Of a DNA stretch of 34,229 bases, positions 1 to 30,656 are shown piece after piece. Origin of the DNA: Utricularia gibba. Its lineage: Eukaryota > Plantae > Magnoliophyta. The position numbers were made by a program, and so were the translations under genes. The first letter of the stretch is position 1. Every line of letters begins with the position of its first letter. The DNA is taken from NCBI GenBank assembly GCA_002189035.1, contig NEEC01000075.1, positions 1-34,229 on the forward strand. The letters run 5' to 3'. Under the pieces are notes generated by a model that ran no database searches, was not told the DNA's origin, and worked only from the letters and a program-made list of their open reading frames with translations.

Positions 1-18
1 AAATCAAGTTGGAGTGAG

Positions 19-289
19 CCCTAGTTATTCCCAAATCAGCTTCATCGAGGAAACTGAAGCCTCGGAGGCGATAGACTGAGTTTTGGGTGTTGTCTGGAGA
101 ATTTGCTATATGCCTGTTGATGATACTTGATAGCTGGGTTAACAGAAGCCTGGAAGTGATTTAGTGAATGACCGGATGAAGTGACGTTGCGTTTGAGGGC
201 TACGGTTGGAAGTTGAAGAAAGCAGCTGCTTGGGATTCGGGAATTTCTTAAACGTAGTAGTGCAACAGCGTTCTTGAGGTTTTGTGGCT
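19..289 (+). repeat. Decayed direct-repeat copy of the UBP gene 5' region (matches 3911-4146)
   Basis: Manual alignment: 19-39 vs 3911-3930 (19/20 plus a 1-nt gap), 164-185 vs 3989-4010 (19/22), 204-224 vs 4031-4051 (17/21), 225-247 vs 4080-4102 (18/23), 261-289 vs 4118-4146 (27/29). All blocks are collinear. Confidence 0.85.
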
Positions 290-436
290 CTGTTGTATCT
301 TCGAAAGTCCCTAGATTTTGTTATCTAACAAGGGGACGGTAGTTTTTGCTCCCACGTTGGAAGTTTGGTTATACGTATGTGCTCGAGTCCTTGATCTTCA
401 GATTGCCTGAAAGTGAGACAGTTTGAAAATCTTCCG

Positions 437-3400
437 ATGGAGAGGCTGGATGAGTGTGAAAATACCGATCTAAAATTTGTTCGTAACATATGCATCCTTG
501 CTCATGTTGATCATGGCAAGACTACTCTTGCTGACCATCTAATTGCTTCCTATGGAGGGGCGTGCTCCATCCAAAGCAAGCTGGTAAGCTCAGGTTCATG
601 GACTACTTGGATGAGGAGCAGAGGCGTGCCATAACGATGAAGAGCTCATCCATTGCTCTTCAATTCAGAGACCATTTTGTAAATTTAATTGATTCTCCAG
701 GACACATGGATTTCTGTAGCGAGGTTTCCACTGCTGCACGCGTGAGCGATGGTGCACTGGTTTTGGTGGATGCTGTTGAGGGTGTTCATATCCAGACGCA
801 TGCTGTTATGCGTCAAGCGTGGATTGAGAAACTGACCCCTTGTTTAGTATTGAATAAGATTGATAGACTGATTTCCGAGTTAAGATTGACTCCTATGGAA
901 GCTTATAATCGATTATTAAGGATAATCCATGAGGTTAATGGGATAGTGAGTGCCTACAAGTCTGAGAAATACTTATCTGATGTAGATTCAATTCTTTTCG
1001 TTACTCCATCCAGTGAAGGTGAAATTAATTACGAGCTCATTGAGGATGATGAGGAGGATACTTTTCAACCTCAAAAAGGAAATGTGGTCTTTGCTTGTGC
1101 CCTAGATGGATGGGGTTTGGGATATGTGACTTTGCTGATCTTTATGCATCTAAGCTTGGAGCTAGCACAACAGCGTTGCAGAAGGCACTTTGGGGGCCTA
1201 GATATTACATCGCAAAGACTAAAACAATTGTTGGCAAGAAAGGAGTTAGCAATATTGCAAAGGCAAAGCCTATGTTCGTGCAATTTGTTTTGGACCCACT
1301 TTGGCAGGTTTTTCATGCTACTTTGGAACCTGATGGTGATAGGGGATTACTTGAAAAACTTATCAAATCCTTTGGTTTATCTGTACCATCTCGTGATCTT
1401 CAAAATAAAGATCCAAAAGCTGTACTGCAGGCTGTCCTGAGTCGTTGGCTTCCTTTATCAGATGCAATATTGTCTATGGTTGTCAAGTGCATGCCTGACC
1501 CTGTGGCAGCTCAATCTTTCCGCATTCAGAGGTTGCTGCCAAAACAAGATATCGATAAAAATGGGGAAAGCAGTAATATTCTTGATGAAGCCAATTCTAC
1601 TAGAAAATCTGTTGAGGCTTGTGATTGCAGCCCTTCTGCGCCATGCATTGCATTTGTCTCTAAAATGTTTGCGCTTCCAATATCAATGCTTCCTCGTGGA
1701 GAGGTTTTGGACACTATGACTGATGATAGCGCATCAGGCGAGTTCTTTCTTGCATTTGCCAGGGTTTTTAGCGGGGTGTTCACTAAAGGCCAGAGAGTTT
1801 TTGTGCTTCTTCATTGTATGATCCACTTAAGGTGGGTTCAAATCAGAAGCATATTCAAGAAGCTGAGTTGCAAGGCTTATATCTCATGATGGGTCAAGGA
1901 CTCAAGCCCATTGCTTCTGCAAAGGCAGGCAGCATTGTTGCCATACGAGGTCTTGGGCAGCACATATTGAAGAGCGCCACTCTTTCGTCGACAGTTAATG
2001 CATGGCCTTTCTCAAGCATGGTTTTCCAAGTTTCACCTACACTGAGAGTGGCAATAGAGCCATCTGATCCTGGGGACATTAGTGCGCTTAGCAAAGGACT
2101 GCGGCTCTTAAATCGTGCTGACCCATTTGTGGAGGTCACGGTTTCTGCAAGGGGCGAGCATGTTCTTGCAGCAGCTGGAGAAGTTCACCTGGAGAGATGC
2201 ATAAAAGATTTGAAGGAGAGGTTTGCAAAAGTTAGTTTAGAAGTCTCCTCCTCTTGTTTCTTACAAAGAGACAATTCAGGGTGATGCTGCATATCCTTGG
2301 GAAAATCACAAGCTGTTAACTTGCACCTCTGACTTCGTGGAAAGGACAACGCCCAATGGGCGAGGTGTTGTTCGTGTGCAGGTTCTTAAACTTCCCAATC
2401 CTCTCACGGAGCTTCTTGATAAAAGTTCTGAATTACTTGGAGAATTAATCAGAGGAAACTCTAAACAGACCGATAAAATCCTAGGAACATCAGTAAGCAG
2501 TTCAGAGGATGGTAACCTAACTGAGACACTGAAGGAGAAAATGGTCGAGGCAGTGGAAAATGATATTTCAGCTAGAGTAAATGAGGTCGGAGGTGATAAG
2601 ATTGAGAAGTATAGAAAGGAGTGGAGTAATATTTTCAGGAGAATATGGGCACTTTGGTCCGAGTGAAGTTGGCCCCAATATTCTTTTAACTCCTGGAAAG
2701 GGAAAAACGTTGGACGGTGCTGCTCTTATTAGTGGCCCCCCTCATGTATCTGAGAAGCTAGGTTTTGTGATGCCGGTGAGAGTCAGAGTTCTTCGTCAGA
2801 ATCATCTGTTACTGAAGAAATGTTGCTGAAAGAAGCCGAGAATCTGGAGAGCAGTGTGCTGTCTGGATTTCAGTTGGCCACTTCCTCTGGTCCCTTATGT
2901 GATGAACCTATGTGGGGCTTGGCCTTCATTGTGGAAGCCATCATTTCTCCGGTTGATCATCAGCCGTTGACAGATGATGCTGTTTCCTATCAGCAACCTG
3001 ATCAGTACGGATTATTTGCTGGCCAGGTTATGACAGCAGTTAAAGAAGCTTGTCGAGCAGCCGTACTCAAAGGCAAACCTAGACTCGTTGAAGCATGGTA
3101 CTTCTGTGAACTGAACACCCCACAGAACATCTGGGATCAATGTACGCTGTCCTGGCTCGAAGAAGGGCTAGAGTTATCAAAGAAGAGATGCAGGAAGGTT
3201 CCTCCCTCTTCACTGTACATGCATATGTTCCGGTTGCAGAGAGTTTTGGCTTTGCGGATGAGCTGAGACGATGGACGTCCGGAGCATCCAGCGCACTGCT
3301 GGTTTTCAGTCACTGGGAAACACTCAACGAGGACCCCTTCTTCGTGCCTAAAACAGAAGAGGAAGTCGAGGAGTATGGAGATGGCTCCAGCGTGCCCCAG

Positions 3401-3511
3401 AACATGGCAAGAAAGCTTATCGATGCTGTGAGGAGGCGAAAAGGTCTGCCAGTTGAGGAGAAAGTCGTCCAACATGCGACCAAGCAGAGAACATTGGCCC
3501 GCAAAGTCTAG
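437..3511 (+). CDS. EFL1: Elongation factor-like GTPase 1 (EFL1/RIA1, 60S maturation); intronless CDS with 7 apparent frameshifts
   Basis: ORF pieces join into a full EF2-like protein: G1 [62 protein letters not shown]-terminal [26 protein letters not shown]. Frame changes at about 557-560 (GGGG), 1112-1118, 1807, 2245-2250 (CT run), 2653-2656, 2763-2766 and 3118-3121. No in-frame nonsense codon is needed. The ATG at 437 was chosen. Intact gene versus pseudogene is unresolved. Confidence 0.9.
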
Positions 3512-4018
3512 CCAGAAGACCAATTTTGGTATATCATCAAATGGCTCATGATAATTTTTTTTATAAAAATTAAGTTGTTTAATTTTTTATTAAATATAAT
3601 AATTTTGTACTTTTAAAGTTATTAAATTTCAATTTTTATTTTTTTAAATATTATTTTGAAAAAATATTTCTCAATAATTTATATCAAACGGATCAAATAT
3701 TTCTTTCTAATAAAAAAATAACATGCGGTTGTTTTTTTTGGTCAAATAACGTGGAATTTTTAATTTTTGTATTCCTCCCTTTTTATATTGCTAAAATGAA
3801 AATGCATGCACAAGGTAATATTAATTTATTTAAATATTATTTTTTCGAGTACAACATGGGAGCGTGCAATATTTCTCCTCTATTTACGTTTCTGATATCT
3901 GACGATCGAACCCTAGCTATCCCAAATCAGGCTTACCGTGGCGGGTGATTTTGTTGGAGGAACAGCAGAATCGCGGAGGCGAGATGGAGTGAGTGATCGG
4001 ATGAGGTGACAGTTAATT

Positions 4019-6396
4019 ATGGGAGCGACGGGTTCGAAGCTGGAGAAGGCATTGGGCGACCAATTTCCTGAGGGCGAGCGCTACTTTGGACTTGAGAATT
4101 TCGGAAACACGTGTTACTGCAACAGCGTTCTTCAGGTTTTCTGGCTTGTTGAGTTATTTTAGTTATGTTGTTGGGGCCGATTGTGCTCCTGTATTTCCCC
4201 TCTACTTGGGCGAATTTATTCATGCGTGACCCTGATCGCCAAAGTCGCGTTTTTTTTTCCCCAAAGCGGGAGTTTATGAAGTTCCGTTAAGGTTGTTCTC
4301 GGTTGCATGTTTTTCACAATTAATGCTAATGAGTATATGAGTATCATGATAGCGGTACTGTTAGAATGTGTTACCTGATCGTCATGTTCGTCATATCTTG
4401 AACAAACTGCGAGGTTTTTTGTTATTCTGGTACCAAATCGTTTCTGGTATTCTACTACTGATTACTTCTGTAGATGAGACCATCTTGCCCTGATCTATTT
4501 CCACACCTCCCTGAAATTAGCAGTATCCATTTGCTGGTTCTTTTTTGTTTTCCGACACCTAGGATGTGAATCCTTTTCACTATTTTTTCGTCTTGGATTC
4601 AACATTGTTCTTTATTCTAATTGCTTCTTCCTATTTTCATGTACTTATTCCCACAATATCATTGAAATTCTTCTTTGCAATAATAATTGTTGCTTTTTTA
4701 GGCACTCTATTTCTGTGTTCCTTTTCGGGAACAGTTGCTGGAGTACCATTCAACTAACAAAGGTCCTATTGATGCAGAAGAAAACTTGTTAACATGCCTA
4801 GCGGACTTGTTTTTGCAGGTATTTTTTTTTTCAAAGGGTGAAATATATTGATGTGCAGTATACAACTGATTTAGGATTCTGGATTATGGATGTGCATTAT
4901 GCCACTCATTCCGTAAACTGAGTAGTCTGTGGTCGGAGTATATGTGTATGTATTCATGGCTTTTTGTGAACTTTAATTGTATGCTTGTTGATGCAGTGTC
5001 TCCAATTTGTTTTCCACCTAATATGTTGCTGTTCTCTAAGTTTCAGATTAATTTTTATTCCTAATTTTATTTGTAGATTAGTACACAGAAGAAGAAAACT
5101 GGTGTTCTTGCTCCAAAACGTTTTGTTCAGCGTCTGAGGAAGCAAAATGAAATTTTTCGCAGTTACATGCACCAGGTTTTTCCATTGATCTTCCTTAAAA
5201 AATATATTTTCGATCCTCATTATGCTTTCGTTATATACACCTATGCTTGTTCTTTGCCCTTAGAGCTCAGTGGTTTTTATTTCTTTTCAAAGTGTAATGA
5301 GTTGAGATGATGTTTTATGTGCAGGATGCTCACGAGTTCTTGAATTATTTGCTGAATGAGCTTGTTGACATCGTGGAGAAAGAAGCTGGAGCTGCCAAAA
5401 GTGATCAAGAAACTTCTCAGAATGGACCAAAAAATGGGGTTTCCAATGGCCATCATAAGGAGCCCCTTATTACCTGGGTGCACAAAAGTTTCCAGGTGAG
5501 TTGAGTTTGGTGGTTATCATTGAATTGGAACCTTTCTGAATTGTCAGTCAGGTGTATCAATGTGTAATTCTATGTTGGGTAAGGGTGTCTTCTCTGTTGT
5601 CTGTTTGTTTTGTTTTTCTTGTGGCAGTGGGATCTTTCTTGAAAATATGTTGTTAAATTGGCTGTCGTTTTTGTCATTCACTTCCATATTATGTGACGGC
5701 CCAGGGATTATTGACGAATGAAACAAGGTGCTTATGCTGTGAGACAGTGACGGCAAGAGATGAAACGTTTCTTGACTTGAGCCTTGATATTGAGCAGAAT
5801 AGTTCAATTACTAGTTGCCTTAAAAACTTCAGCTCCACCGAAACATTGAATGCTGAGGACAAATTCTTCTGTGATAAATGCTGCAGGTTAGTCGTGTTTT
5901 TTTCTCATAAAGACTGTGACAATCTTTTACCTCTCTTTGCAAAAGACTGAACCCCGCTTTACAGAGAATAAGGATTGTTTTGCATTGCAGCTTGCAAGAG
6001 GCACAAAAAAGAATGAAGATAAAAAGGCCACCCCAGATTCTAGTCATACATCTGAAAAGATTCAAGTACATAGAACAGTTGGGACGCTATAAGAAGCTGT
6101 CATATCGCGTTGTGTTCCCTCTGGAGCTCAAACTCAGCAACACAGTCGAAGATGCAGATGCTGAGTACTCATTGTTTGCTGTTGTGGTCCATGTGGGAAG
6201 CGGTCCCAACCATGGCCACTATGTAAGTCTTGTAAAGAGCCACAACCATTGGTTGTTTTTTGATGACGAAAACGTCGAGATGATCGACGAATCAGCCGTC
6301 CAAACATTCTTCGGGTCATCCCAAGAGTACTCCAGTAACACAGATCATGGCTACATCTTGCTCTATGAACGGCTCATCCCCAGTTCCAGCTCCTGA
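4019..6396 (+). CDS. UBP3: Ubiquitin-specific protease UBP3/UBP4 type (USP12/46 family), 363 aa
   Basis: Exons 4019-4135, 4702-4818, 5077-5175, 5325-5495, 5705-5886, 5991-6396 splice GT-AG into an intact 1092-nt ORF. Cys box [23 protein letters not shown], His box [12 protein letters not shown]-terminal [13 protein letters not shown]3 versus UBP4 cannot be distinguished. Confidence 0.95.
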
Positions 6397-10729: not shown

Positions 10730-12338
<1,609 letters not shown>

Positions 12339-13862
12339 ATGACTGCCGTAACTTTTCCCTTTTTCGCTTCCTCCGTTCGTTGCTCCGACAGTTCCTTCTC
12401 AATTTTCGGATTCACGCCTCACAACTGTGCGCTTGCAGGGGCCAGAATGTGTTCAGTGTCGGCCCCGCCCCTGCCGAAAAAGCGCACAGGTGTTCGAAGC
12501 AAAAGCATTCCTTCCTCCAATTCTGAAGCGGAGGACTTGGTGCGCTCTTTGATGTCGAATTTCACTGATAAGCAGCCGTTGACGAGTACCCTCAATAAGT
12601 ACGTAAAGCTTTTGAGGACAGAACACTGTTTCCTGCTGTTTGAGGAGTTGGGGAAGACTGATAAATGGTTTCAATGCCTCGAGGTCTCATTCCCATCCTC
12701 ATCTCTGAATCTCTTGCTTGCTTTATTCTTACTTCATTACTGTATTCTTTCCAAAGTTCCCATAGCCAATTTGCCCTTTTGAAGTCAGGTCTTCAGATGG
12801 ATGCAAAAGCAAAGGTGGTATATAGCTGATAATGGTGTCTATTCAAAGTTGATTTCTGTCATGGGGAAAAAGGGCAAAACTCGTATGGCAATGTGGCTCT
12901 TCTCTGAGATGCGAAACAGTGGTTGCAGGCCAGATACTTCGGTCTACAATGCACTCATCTCAGCCCATCTTCACTCTCGTGATAAAGCGAAGGCACTGGA
13001 CAAGGCTCTCGGTTATTTTGAAAAAATGAAAGGAATGGAGAGACGCCAACCTAATGTTGTAACCTACAACATTCTTCTGAGAGCTTTTGCACAGGCTAAA
13101 AATGTTGAAAAAGTTAACGCACTGTTCAAGGATCTTGATGATAGCATCATCTCCCCTGATATATTCACCTTCAATGGTGTGATGGATGCTTATGGGAAAT
13201 CGGGAATGATTAGGGAAATGGAGTTGGTGCTTTCTAAAATGAAAAGCAATCAGATAAAGCCTGATGTTATTACATTCAATCTTCTGATTGATGCATATGG
13301 GAGAAAGCAGGAGTTTGATAAAATGGAGCAGGTTTTCAAGAGTTTGATGCACTCCAAGGAAAAACCTACACTTCCTACATTTAACTCCATGATCATCAGC
13401 TACGGCAAAGCACGAGCCAGGGAGAAAGCTGAAATGGTTTACCAGAAGATGATCCAGTTGGGCTATAAACCCAGCTTCATTACTTATGAATCCCTCATCA
13501 CGGCCTACGGACAATGTGACTGTGTCTCGAAGGCTCGCGAGATTTTCAACCAGATCGCTGAGACCGAGAGAGTGAAGAGAACTTCAACTTTGAATGCGAT
13601 GCTGGAAGTGTACTGCATGAATTCTCTCCCCATGGAGGCTCACTTGCTTTTTGAAAGTGCACATGCTTTGAAAACGTTTCCAGCCGATCTTTCAACTTAC
13701 AAGATTCTTTACAGAGCTTATACCAAATCCCAGATGAAGGAACTAGTTGATAAGTTACTAGAGCATATGGATAGCAGCGGAATCATCCCAAATAAAAAGT
13801 TTTTCTTGGATACTCTCAGTGTAACAGTACTGGGGTCTTTACCTGCTGAGAAGAGGAGTTGA
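12339..13862 (+). CDS. PPR5: P-class pentatricopeptide repeat protein, PPR5/EMB2453-like (plastid), 472 aa
   Basis: Exons 12339-12683 and 12789-13862. Ser/Phe/Pro-rich transit-like N-terminus. CFLLFEELGKTDKWFQCLEVFRWMQKQRWYIADNGVYSKLISVMGKKG and tandem PPR motifs (VYNALI, TYNILL, TFNGVM, TFNLLI, TFNSMI) match my recollection of PPR5. Confidence 0.85.
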
Positions 13863-14887: not shown

Positions 14888-15346
14888 TTAGGCGGAGGTG
14901 TTGCTAAGAAGGCCGTACCACACGAGACAGAGATCTTCATCGTCGGAGTCTTCATCCTGGCGGCGGCGGCGCTGTTGGGAGGCCACCTCCTCCGGCAACA
15001 AGCTCCGCCGGCAGAGGGGACAGGTGGATGCTTCCCTGAGAAGCCACGTCTCGAGACACGATTTGTGGAACGTGTGCCTGCACTCCGTTTGCCTCAACGC
15101 GTCGCCATCTTCGCACGCAGACAAGCAAACTCCGCACTCCAACGGCTCCCCGCCGACCTCCGCCGCGTAGCTGCATGAGGGAGCTTTCCAGTCAATGACC
15201 TTGAGTAGCTGCACGGTGGCTGTCGACCGCTGCCGCCGGAGATAGTCTCTGACGCCGCCGTAAACGGAGTAGACAAATTGGATAAAGAAGACAGAGATAT
15301 AAAAGACGCCATAATAAGTCAACAAGTGGGATGTAGAAGACGCCAT
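14888..15346 (-). CDS. RING-H2 E3 ubiquitin ligase (ATL/RHA-like), tandem copy 1, 152 aa
   Basis: Intronless ORF with a hydrophobic N-terminus. CGVC-x14-CRH-x2-H-x2-C-x11-CPLC RING-H2 and an acidic C-terminus. Confidence 0.9.
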   Translation of the reverse strand: MASSTSHLLTYYGVFYISVFFIQFVYSVYGGVRDYLRRQRSTATVQLLKVIDWKAPSCSYAAEVGGEPLECGVCLSACEDGDALRQTECRHTFHKSCLETWLLREASTCPLCRRSLLPEEVASQQRRRRQDEDSDDEDLCLVWYGLLSNTSA

Positions 15347-17012: not shown

Positions 17013-17465
17013 CTATATACTGCAATTGCCAAGAATACCGTACCAATCCTCCTCCTCCTCCTCCTCATCCTCGGAATCTCCTTCGAGGCGGCGGAAGCGT
17101 CGTTGGACGGCCTCCGGGAGCAAGCTGCCCCGGCAAAGAGGGCAAGTGGATGCATCCATGAGAAGCCAGGCTTCCAGGCAGGATTTGTGGAACGTGTGGC
17201 TGCACACCGTTTTCCTCAACTCATCGCCTTCTTCATACGTCGAGAGGCAAACTCCGCATTCCGCGGGCTCTGCCCCGAGCTCCGCCGTGTAGCTGCTGGA
17301 GGGAGCTCTGTAGTCGATGATTTTCAGTAGCTCTGCAGCGGCTGTCGGCCTCTCCCGCCGGAGCCGGCGATAGATGAATGCTATGGATTTGATGAAGAAG
17401 ACGGCTGCGTATGCCAAGGCTTTGACACTATAGTAAGTCAATAATTGAGTGACAGCACCCGCCAT
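17013..17465 (-). CDS. RING-H2 E3 ubiquitin ligase (ATL/RHA-like), tandem copy 2, about 150 aa
   Basis: Paralog of copy 1 (LLTYY, ECGVCLS, HTFHKSCLE, ASTCPLCR, WYG.L.N). Start taken at MAGAVT (17465) by alignment with copy 1; an upstream in-frame ATG lies at 17489. TATA-like TATAAATAG on the minus strand near 17500. Confidence 0.9.
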   Translation of the reverse strand: MAGAVTQLLTYYSVKALAYAAVFFIKSIAFIYRRLRRERPTAAAELLKIIDYRAPSSSYTAELGAEPAECGVCLSTYEEGDELRKTVCSHTFHKSCLEAWLLMDASTCPLCRGSLLPEAVQRRFRRLEGDSEDEEEEEEDWYGILGNCSI

Positions 17466-19191
17466 TTTTGCACGTAAAGCATGGCACATGGACGCCCTAT
17501 TTATAATGCAGCTTCTATCTAATCCCTATTTTAGTAAAAAAAAAAAAATCTTACAATTATTTAAATCATGTTTGGTACAAGTTTTTTGTTAGATCAAGCA
17601 ATTTAAATTGATATTTAAAAGTGAAATAGTCGAATTTTATATGAAATTACATATCATTACATAATCAGTATAGTTTAATTTTTTGTAATGTGATTGATAT
17701 TTATTATGTATATGAATTTTCATTTAATTCACTTGACATTTAATTTCAATATTTTAAATGGCTTTATTAATGAAAAACTTAATTAAGGTCTTTTACAATT
17801 AAAGCATTTTTTATTAAAAGAAAGGGATAGGTTCTGTTAATTAACTTGGACTGCCTGATATTTTCTTTTTTATTATATCTTTCCATCATCACATGTTGAT
17901 TTCTAAATCTTACTTTTCTTTCCATATTTGAAAAAATAATAATTTAATGATAGGTGATAACTATGATATTTTTTATTTACTGTATCCATAATATATACTT
18001 TTTGTTGTTGTTACTGAAAAGGTGTTAAACAATATCCAAGTGTATTCAACTACCAAAGGTGGCCTTATTAACTCCCGCAGGGGACACATCTCCCTCCATA
18101 AATGTAACACATGTATGTATAGGGGGCATTCATTAATAAAATCTACATGTTGAATGCGCACAACTAATAATAGTAACATTTTTATAGTTGATTTATTGTT
18201 TGTGGGTAAAGGCAGGGCCGCCATTGACTGTGCGATGTGGCGAAGAGAAGACTTGGGAGCTGGGAGATAGGCTAGGCTAGGATAGGGATAGGGTTGCTGT
18301 TTTTAGATGCAGATCGGCAGAGTGTGTGTGTGGCAGCGGCAGATCGTTGACGCCGTCAAGGTGGCCTCCTCCGCCTCGGAGAGTCGGGGCGGCATCTGGG
18401 TGGGTATTTAATGCCCGCCCCCAGTGGCTCCTTCAATTTCTGCGAGAAATTTTGAAAAATGCATTCAAACAAAAAAAGATTTAAGTGATAAATTGTTAAG
18501 GGTGTGCGAGTGTGCGCCGTCTCGTCTCCGGCCTGGCCTAGCCTAGCGTGGCTCCGCCGTGGAGGGAGGGAGGGAGCTCGGCTCTATAGTCGGAGTCGAT
18601 GATTGAATCTCACTCCATCCTCCTGGTAGGTGGTAATTGGTAATCGGTACTGGGCTGCCTGCTCCCGGAATTTGACTCGTTCAAAAAAGCCCACCACTTT
18701 GTTGTCGTCGTCTTTTTGGATTCAGTTCCATGTCCCCAGGCCAGGGATGGGATGTCGCCTGAATAGCAGGAGTGAGTGAGGAGCATACCGACCGACACCA
18801 TGTCCATCACTTGGCTTGGGTCTGCAATAATAAATTTCATTCTTTATTTATGTAACATATATTAAATAAGTTTCAAAAAGTTATTGACTTCTAACAAAAT
18901 AGAGACTGATGGTTCCTAACTAATTTATTATAAGGAATATTTCTGTTATTTTTCAAATAAAAATATAATACAAAATTGTTTCTTAAATACTAAATTTCAA
19001 CTATCGTATTATTTGATATTATTAAAACGATTGTCATAAATCATGCCATGCCATCCTTCATTGATTATGAAAAATTAATTTTTTAAGGCAAGTAAATTAA
19101 ACCATTTTGATTGCAATTGTAAATCACTAATCAATGTTTCTTGATTCTAATCATTTGGCCTCACCTGTCTGTTTCGCGGCTATGTATTTGT

Positions 19192-28674: not shown

Positions 28675-30656
28675 TTATCCTGCGGATCGAGAGAGCCTTG
28701 ACCCCAAGGCTCAAAGTCAGGAAAATGACGTCGAAGCCAAGAAGCATCTTCCCAAGTGGCGTGTGCTGGGTGCGCATCAGCCCACTAGATAAGTAATTGA
28801 AGGCAGGGGAGACAATTGCGAGAAATGAGACGACGATTCAAGATACGAGAGGGGTGAGGATGGGTTTTCCGTCATTAGAATACTGGGGTAAGTTAGGAGT
28901 GGGGAGAGTTTGGGGCTGATACATTTTTTGAGAAGGGACACATGAAAAACTGGGTGGATTTTGGAGTCAGCCGGTAAATCTAATCGATATGCAACTGTGC
29001 CAATTTTTTCCAGAATGGGATAGGGGCCAAAATAGCGGCAGGAAAGTTTCAGATTTCGGCGAATGGCAACCGAGGTTTGACGATAGGGTTGGAGCTTCAG
29101 ATATACTAAGTCACCAGGTTGGAAAAGGCGTTCAGAACGATGTTGATCAGCATAAGTTTTCATGCGATTTTGGGCTTGCTGTAAGTTGCCTTTGAGTAAC
29201 TGGAGCATTTGTAAGCGATATTGAAGGGAGGGGATGGGTTCATTGAGAGAGGAAGGGGGTGGGGTGCCAGGAAGGTGGGAAGGGGTATACCCATATAGAG
29301 CCTCAAAGGGGTCATTTTCAAGCTGGTGTGATAAGAGGTATTGTACCAATATTCAGCCATGGCAAGCCAAGAAGTCCATTTTTTGGGTTGGTGGTGGCAT
29401 ACAGCACGAAGGTATGTCTCCAAACATTGGTTCACCCGTTCAGTCTGCCCATCAGATTGAGGGTGATATGAAGTAGAGAGGTTTAATTGGATATCAAGGC
29501 GCTTACAAAGGAGGGACCAGAAATGACTGGTGAACAGTTTATCTCGATCGGAGATAATATTAGTGGGTAGCCCATGGAGTTTATAGATGTTGTCCAGAAA
29601 GATCTCGGAGACCATTTCCGCAGAGAATGGGTGAGCTAAGGGGAAAAAGTGTGCATACTTCATTAAGCGGTCCACCACCACAAAAATCACCGTTTTTCCA
29701 TGAGAAATAGGTAAACCTTCAATGAAATCCATACTAATCGAACTCCATTGTTTCTCAAGAATAGGAAGAGGTTGGAGCAAACCGGGAGATGCTGATCTAT
29801 CAAAATGAATTTGACGACAGGTCCCACATTCTTGAACCCATTGTTCAATATGTTTATGCATATTCTTCCAATAAAAATACCTTTTCAGGCGTTGGTAGGT
29901 GGTGTGGGCACCCGAGTGGCCCCCAATGGCAGAAGAGTGAAGGGCCAAGAAAAATTTGCCTTGAAGGTCTTTATCAGCGCCAATGCACCATCGGCCCTTA
30001 TATTTGAGTAGGTCATTGTGGAGTTGAAATTTGGGAAAAGATGAGGGGTCCGCTAATTTACTAATATAAATGTCATGAAGATAAGGATTTTGTTTATAAC
30101 TGTGTTGTATCTCCAGGAGCCATTCCGGTTGTAAGGAAGAAAGGATAAAGAGATGTGCTGTGCATGAGAGAGCATCTGCTGCCAAATTCTCACAGCCATG
30201 TTTGTAGTGAATGTCAAAATCATATCCAATTAATTTTGACATCCATTTCTGTTGAAAAAGAGTGCCTAAACCTTGCTCCTTCAAGAATCGCAAGCTTTGA
30301 TGGTCTGTTTTGACAGTGAAATGGCCGCTCATCAAATAGTGTTTCCAATAAAGAATAGCTTGTACCACTGTAATTAATTCCTTTTCATATATAGATTTTC
30401 CCAAAAATTTGTCACCCAGAGCCTTTGAAAAATAAGCAATAGGATGTCCGTCTTGAGTAAGAACTGCGCCAATCCCAGGGTCACATGCGTCAGTTTCCAC
30501 AATAAATGGCTTCTGGAAGTTGGGGAGAGATAATACCGGGGCAGAAGAGACCACTTGTTTTAATAAGTGAAGTGTGTGAGTCACATCATCGTTTCAACCG
30601 AAATTATATTTCTTCAATAATTGGGTGAGAGGACGACTAATCAGCCCATAACCATG
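28675..30656 (-). mobile_element. Ty3/gypsy chromovirus pol fragment (RT end, RNase H, integrase, chromodomain), 5'-truncated and degenerate
   Basis: [15 protein letters not shown] (RT end), VETDACDPGIGAVL and YEKEL (RNase H), H-H-C-C zinc finger, SMDFIEG/SDRD/QTER (DDE), [10 protein letters not shown], then LI*W..ATWED..FPDF..PWGQG (chromodomain). Stop near 30600, frameshift near 29250 and stop in the chromodomain. Confidence 0.95.

Follow-up and report, generated by a model that had tools for sequence, protein, structure and literature searches.

When a partial or tandem duplication extends across the limits of a gene, chimeric genes and genes with recruited 5′ ends can arise, as documented in a survey of Drosophila yakuba (PMC5460883) and in a review (PMC3449122). 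In plants, chimeric retrogenes of Oryza combine an intronless coding body with a 5′ segment borrowed from another gene (PMC6881317), and adjacent genes on the same strand can give rise to read-through (conjoined) fusion transcripts (PMC11616359). The EFL1 locus of Utricularia gibba shares features with each of these systems and differs from each of them. It was analysed in a window of 34,229 nucleotides, i.e., the whole stretch of DNA considered here (contig NEEC01000075.1, forward strand). Contigs assembled from two DNA runs (X1 and X8) and two RNA runs (X3 and X7) were compared with this window over positions 1–6000. Local duplication has rebuilt the front end of EFL1, with a fragment of a neighboring deubiquitinase (UBP) gene taking its place; the case is genuine, if not very unusual. 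The following features are relevant.

16–295 (+): decayed, non-coding copy of the front of a UBP3/4-type gene (5′ UTR, exon 1, beginning of intron 1), located in the EFL1 5′ UTR (alignment, RNA contigs)
296–421 (+): junction zone with marginal similarity to UBP intron 1 (304–417), ending in a relic acceptor (alignment, acceptor position)
422–436 (+): beginning of the ancestral exon 2 of EFL1, five codons that are no longer translated (19-codon count to VRNIC)
437–3511 (+): EFL1 coding sequence, a single exon of 1026 codons after seven indel corrections (reads, frame, homology)
3512–3569 (+): EFL1 3′ UTR, given as the extent of the unspliced X3 RNA contig (RNA contig)
3529–3930 (+): EFL1–UBP spacer, 77.6% A+T, spliced out with GT..AG borders from a read-through RNA of X7 (RNA contig)
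3908–4151 (+): source-type segment consisting of the UBP 5′ UTR, exon 1 and start of intron 1 (alignment)
4019–6396 (+): UBP3/4-type (USP12/46-like) deubiquitinase gene, an unbroken frame of 363 codons spread over six exons (RNA joints support three of the five junctions, two are placed from loose RNA contig ends)

Integrity, identity and ancestral structure of EFL1

As assembled, the EFL1 coding region of the window consists of eight overlapping frame pieces in the list of open reading frames, broken at seven sites, and the genes next to it have long open exons. All four runs share six indels relative to the window within the coding sequence (+ strand): an additional G behind 556, a G behind 1111, a T behind 1806, TC behind 2243, a T behind 2762, and one base too many in the window at 2653. 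These six read-supported corrections open the frame from 437 to about 3120. The remaining break is probably caused by a base missing from the C run at 3118–3121, as judged from the frame and from the match of the restored protein to its orthologues. With an N at this site, the coding sequence has 3081 nt and 1026 codons with a single terminal stop. All seven sites are located in short mono- or dinucleotide runs. X1 shows no substitutions relative to the window and thus represents the same genotype, which identifies the indel differences as assembly errors. EFL1 is therefore an intact open reading frame of 1026 codons, and the frameshifts of the window are errors of assembly, six of them contradicted by the reads and the seventh deduced from the frame. 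Gene models built on this assembly will wrongly label EFL1 as a pseudogene, since its apparent frameshifts are run-length errors. Such errors are unevenly spread: seven fall within one 3-kb gene and none within 4113–6000 when compared with X1.

The best match of the EFL1 product among solved structures is an EFL1 chain (5anb_K; 1.4e-51), with EF2 at 1.8e-33. Window pieces of the gene match PF00009 (GTP_EFTU; 5.5e-33) and PF00679 (EFG_C; 1.3e-15), corresponding to an N-terminal GTP-binding domain and an EF-G C-terminal domain. Over residues 8–1025 the conceptual protein is 75–78% identical to Lamiales EFL1 proteins that carry PF25118; the closest ones are those of Paulownia and Sesamum, with 78% identity end to end in the case of Paulownia. 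Judged by these similarities, the gene product is EFL1, a ribosome assembly GTPase, and it is nearer to EFL1 than to eEF2 or Snu114. Expression was found in five RNA runs. Among the 19 listed substitutions between genotypes in the coding sequence, 11 are synonymous and eight are not. A diverged second EFL1 copy may be present elsewhere in the genome.

The exon structure of orthologues had been proposed as a check of the original prediction, in which an intronless EFL1 coding sequence arrived at the UBP locus. In Nelumbo, the annotated EFL1 coding sequence translates directly from the DNA and is fully intronless. In Paulownia, Sesamum and Erythranthe, the conceptual protein aligns to one unbroken frame of about 3.06 kb, which is preceded by a short coding exon 1 (MAEISEK..., 23–34 residues) and an intron of about 115–300 nt. 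The main exon is thus intronless in all of these orthologues, as it is in the window, and what has been lost here is the Lamiales exon 1 together with intron 1. The uninterrupted main exon is ancestral and therefore does not point to a recent arrival or to a retrocopy; on this point the original prediction does not hold.

The extra coding exon and intron are a feature of core Lamiales (L001, 10001–10445; L002, 10001–10249; L003, 10001–10216) and are absent from Olea, Cinchona and Nelumbo. The N-terminal extension starting with MAEISEK is also found in Perilla, Salvia, Buddleja and others. It is lineage-specific, and we know of no role for it.

The leader of EFL1 and its derivation from a UBP gene

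Positions 16–295 of the window are collinear with, and on the same strand as, 3908–4151, which comprise the 5′ UTR, exon 1 (ATG at 4019, exon end at 4135) and the first intron bases of the UBP3/4-type gene. When window 1–450 was used as a blastn query against the remaining 30.7 kb of the window, significant matches were confined to the UBP 5′ end and were all collinear and same-stranded. The stretch 225–295 matched 4080–4151 (79%, E = 2e-11) and 163–224 matched 3988–4051 (75%, E = 8e-5); a further block, 16–39 versus 3908–3930, has the same order and strand as the others. In a gapped local alignment, the core of the repeat (143–295 versus 3966–4151) has 119 identical bases among 152 aligned (78%), corresponding to a Jukes-Cantor distance of about 0.26. 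Its score of 53.5 compares with 12.4 ± 1.4 for shuffled leaders (z about 29), and its single long gap is exactly UBP 4052–4079, i.e., 28 nt that are absent from the leader copy. The original prediction had described five collinear blocks with this very deletion; the repeat is confirmed, and the gapped alignment agrees on the deletion. The 5′ block (16–81 versus 3908–3994) is weaker, its score being 19.3 with a shuffle maximum of 17.8. On the UBP side, the similarity starts at 3908, which pairs with leader position 16. A duplication inside the leader (56–79 versus 145–167) is not significant.

The similarity had also been proposed to run on into UBP intron 1 as far as about position 395. This is correct for the first intron bases (up to 4151); the continuation, seen as a 70% match between 304–417 and 4241–4333, is marginal, as shuffled sequences reach the same score (17.2) at their maximum. 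The leader copy spans the boundary between UBP exon 1 and intron 1, which implies that it was copied as DNA or unspliced RNA and not from a mature mRNA.

Both a dispersed repeat and a chimeric assembly had been named as outcomes that would speak against this interpretation. The former, including a transposable element, was rejected because blastn detected no further leader copy elsewhere in the 34-kb window, DNA depth over 1–400 equaled that of the flanks in both DNA runs, and no Rfam match was found in 1–4400. An assembly chimera was rejected because DNA contigs of two independent runs span the leader junctions: one X8 contig begins some 2.5 kb before the window and ends at 3718, and X1 contigs cover 65–981 and 972–4132.

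The leader copy has decayed. The UBP start codon is gone (TTATGGG has become TTTGAGG) and the old UBP frame runs into stops, with remnants such as CNSVLEVLWL still readable in frame 3. The longest run of identity between leader and UBP is 15 nt, which makes cross-talk of the siRNA type between the two unlikely. At least 19 of the 436 leader positions differ between X8 and the window (at least 4.4%), as compared with about 1.7% in the rest of the region. Such divergence is consistent with a gene under constraint whose leader is free to drift. Overall, X8 DNA is about 2% different from the window, which is much for one species label.

RNA contigs together are collinear with the window from at least 24 nt upstream of base 1 to 3569. 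They include an X3 contig that covers 1–789 and begins 24 nt before window base 1, and X7 contigs for 132–232, 267–384 (two variants each) and 355–3527. No splice joint within 1–436 was reported in these contigs; as the RNA evidence consists of assembled contigs and not of reads, a minor spliced form could escape detection. RNA depth was zero in the spacer at 3601–3800 and in UBP intron 1, indicating that the RNA assemblies are free of DNA contamination at the contig level. Of the words sampled from the leader sequence, a fraction of 0.91–1.00 was present in four RNA runs of one study and 0.44 in one run of a second study. The UBP-like segment is thus an unspliced part of the EFL1 5′ UTR. In this respect the original prediction, which derived the leader from the UBP 5′ UTR, exon 1 and intron start and had it transcribed together with EFL1, is supported: the assembled transcripts traverse the UBP-like segment, in contrast to the refuting outcome of a start downstream of about 400. 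The 5′ UTR is at least 460 nt long and contains five upstream ATGs with open reading frames of 2–14 codons; no special RNA folding was detected in the leader (z = −0.04). The two X7 leader variants (132–232 and 267–384) occur at similar depth, so that two alleles appear to be expressed.

At its 3′ end, the leader meets the remains of the ancestral gene structure. Exon 2 of Paulownia, Sesamum and Erythranthe starts 19 codons before VRNIC and follows ...TTTCAG; in the window the same 19 codons start at 422 and follow ...GAGACAG. Judged from this correspondence, the AG at 420–421 is a relic of the ancestral EFL1 intron 1 acceptor, of which the polypyrimidine tract is gone. Translation now begins at 437, formerly an internal methionine codon of exon 2, with an in-frame stop upstream at 392–394. 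No trace of the Lamiales EFL1 exon 1 was found in 1–436, although such an exon could survive further upstream, outside the window. Since homology to exon 2 begins exactly at 422 behind the relic acceptor, the UBP fragment has replaced EFL1 exon 1 and intron 1. It is this replacement by a UBP-type exon 1 and intron start, with an intron-to-intron junction within 296–421, that is the new feature of the locus.

Whether the promoter was acquired along with the leader is a separate matter. EFL1 transcripts start at least 40 nt upstream of the beginning of the copy (position 16), i.e., before window base 1, which places the EFL1 promoter outside the window. Of the sequence before the copy, 44 nt were compared (window 2–15 and 30 nt of a loose X8 contig end); they are no more similar to 3530–3907 than shuffled sequences are, a comparison of low power in A+T-rich DNA at an expected identity of about 75%. 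Capture of the leader is thus established, whereas a UBP origin of the EFL1 promoter, as originally predicted, is a candidate reading.

Neighborhood and origin of the rearranged front end

In Paulownia, Sesamum and two Erythranthe assemblies, EFL1 (+) is located between an MLO gene (−) and an actin-related gene (−), and neither a UBP-type gene nor a UBP exon 1 was found within 10 kb of EFL1 in these three genera. In the window, EFL1 is followed by the UBP3/4-type gene and by genes for a kinase, a Rab-type GTPase, a PPR protein, two RING-H2 proteins and an HSF, by a Ty3-type fragment, and by a phosphodiesterase gene. EFL1 thus resides in a non-ancestral context, and EFL1 and UBP became neighbors in the lineage of U. 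gibba. The synteny comparison thereby supports the earlier view that their adjacency is derived, as the three other Lamiales retain the order MLO – EFL1 – actin-related.

Three further observations concern the downstream genes. The PPR gene (12318–13862, +) shifts frame between 12318–12782 and 12801–13862, due to either a short intron or a run-length error. The RING-H2 genes (14888–15346 and 17013–17489, both −; about 152–158 codons) are arranged in tandem, and each has long overlapping open reading frames on the opposite strand. The Ty3-type retrotransposon fragment (28777–30584, −) encodes RNase H, integrase and an SH3-like domain in two overlapping frames and is either degraded or affected by an assembly indel.

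Only about 400 bp separate EFL1 from UBP, which has the same orientation, and read-through gives some transcripts that are spliced onto UBP exon 1. This was observed in one X7 RNA contig (3382 nt), in which 355–3527 is joined to 3930–4132. The 402 nt skipped have GT..AG borders, the shorter side of the joint measures 203 nt, the donor (3529) is located just behind the EFL1 stop codon and the acceptor (3930) in the UBP 5′ UTR. Some EFL1 transcripts hence run into UBP with the spacer spliced out, as documented by one contig of one run; X3 instead shows an unspliced EFL1 3′ end reaching 3569. Within UBP, a 37-nt contig (4103–4139) has double DNA depth (93.6 versus about 42 in X8), and contigs of both DNA runs break at 4132. 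The double depth implies that a UBP3/4 paralogue elsewhere shares the Cys-box stretch exactly, and the leader may in fact have been copied from this paralogue.

Taking the data together, we consider it probable that EFL1 is a functional, single-copy, single-exon gene whose front end was rebuilt by a DNA-level rearrangement that put a duplicate of the UBP 5′ end before exon 2. The breakpoints would have been located in intron 1 of a UBP3/4-type gene and in, or close to, intron 1 of EFL1. As a result, EFL1 exon 2 would have come to follow immediately upon a partial UBP duplicate that comprises the 5′ UTR, exon 1 and the start of the intron. The UBP-derived piece would then have decayed by loss of its ATG, the 28-nt deletion and the gain of stops and, remaining unspliced, would now serve only as about 280 nt of EFL1 5′ UTR. 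Translation would start at the internal methionine of the old exon 2 (437), with loss of the Lamiales-specific N-terminal extension. Three mechanisms may be considered for this rearrangement: parts of two genes were duplicated in tandem, an insertion generated a long target duplication, or a deletion fused a second UBP copy to EFL1. All three models predict alike the layout of copy, EFL1 body, spacer and original.

Tandem duplication without regard to gene boundaries would require that the two genes were already adjacent; the duplicated stretch would have begun in intron 1 of EFL1 and ended in intron 1 of UBP. A chimeric gene composed of the UBP 5′ end and EFL1 exon 2 would thereby have been placed between the parental EFL1 and an intact UBP, and the parental EFL1 and the copied spacer would later have been deleted in a deletion-prone genome. 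The layout corresponds to the junction product described for tandem duplications in Drosophila (PMC5460883, PMC3449122) and both breakpoints are intronic, but EFL1 is not next to UBP in the relatives, and the 44 nt upstream of the copy resemble neither the spacer nor the UBP promoter, a comparison with little power in A+T-rich DNA. We therefore regard this route as possible but doubtful. An insertion of EFL1 exon 2 and its 3′ flank into the first intron of UBP, with a target duplication of 240–430 bp, would amount to full promoter capture, in that the native UBP promoter would drive EFL1, and the downstream UBP gene would depend on a new promoter provided by the spacer, on read-through from EFL1, or on both. 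Such an event is compatible with the direct orientation of copy, insert and copy, with the location of EFL1 outside its conserved Lamiales neighborhood, with the read-through transcript spliced onto UBP exon 1, and with the lack of similarity upstream of the two copies, which this model expects (44 nt compared, at low power). Against it stands that transcription starts 40 nt or more before the first similar base, and that translation of UBP from a bicistronic read-through RNA would be inefficient; in our judgment, full promoter capture is unlikely. The more specific notion that exon 2 dropped into the UBP first intron such that the UBP promoter drives EFL1 and UBP is expressed in part via read-through and spacer removal is, in our estimate, quite improbable; if true, a two-gene transcription unit would have been created in one step.

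The eight frame pieces of the assembled coding sequence and the absence of introns suggest at first glance that EFL1 is instead a dead pseudogene or a processed retrocopy, with a leader whose similarity is devoid of functional meaning. Yet six of the seven frameshifts are contradicted by both DNA runs and both RNA runs, each of the seven falls in a short base run, and X1 lacks substitutions. Moreover, orthologues share the uninterrupted exon, a relic acceptor precedes it, and the gene is expressed in five RNA runs. This possibility is thus extremely remote. A processed retrogene in particular was rejected because no orthologue introns have been lost from the large exon, there is no A tract, and the flanking repeat of about 240–280 nt includes intron sequence. 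Indeed, no poly(A) remnant was found after the EFL1 3′ UTR; a T run and mixed A+T-rich DNA follow the stop codon.

Comparison with known chimeric genes

The read-through RNA links EFL1 to the conjoined transcripts of adjacent same-strand plant genes (PMC11616359) by virtue of a GT..AG intron with its donor (3529) shortly after the stop codon of EFL1 and its acceptor (3930) within the 5′ UTR of UBP. Unlike those transcripts, the EFL1–UBP product, seen in one contig of one run, would be bicistronic and not an in-frame fusion.

With the chimeric retrogenes of Oryza (PMC6881317), EFL1 has in common an intronless coding body joined to a 5′ segment borrowed from another gene. By contrast, the body of EFL1 is ancestrally intronless, its acceptor relic is kept, poly(A) is absent, and the borrowed piece contains an intron, which points to an event at the DNA level and not to reverse transcription.

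In layout, the locus resembles the Drosophila chimeric genes (PMC5460883, PMC3449122), in which a direct duplicate of a 5′ end (first exon and intron start) is likewise placed before an unrelated neighbor, with intronic breakpoints, and is transcribed together with the recipient. The EFL1 locus differs from these in that the recruited exon adds no protein, is unspliced and survives only as 5′ UTR. Furthermore, the recipient is not a spare duplicate but a single-copy essential housekeeping gene that has been deprived of its own first coding exon. Even a gene for ribosome biogenesis of this kind can thus keep working after a piece of an unrelated neighbor has taken the place of its leader, its first coding exon and the intron that followed.
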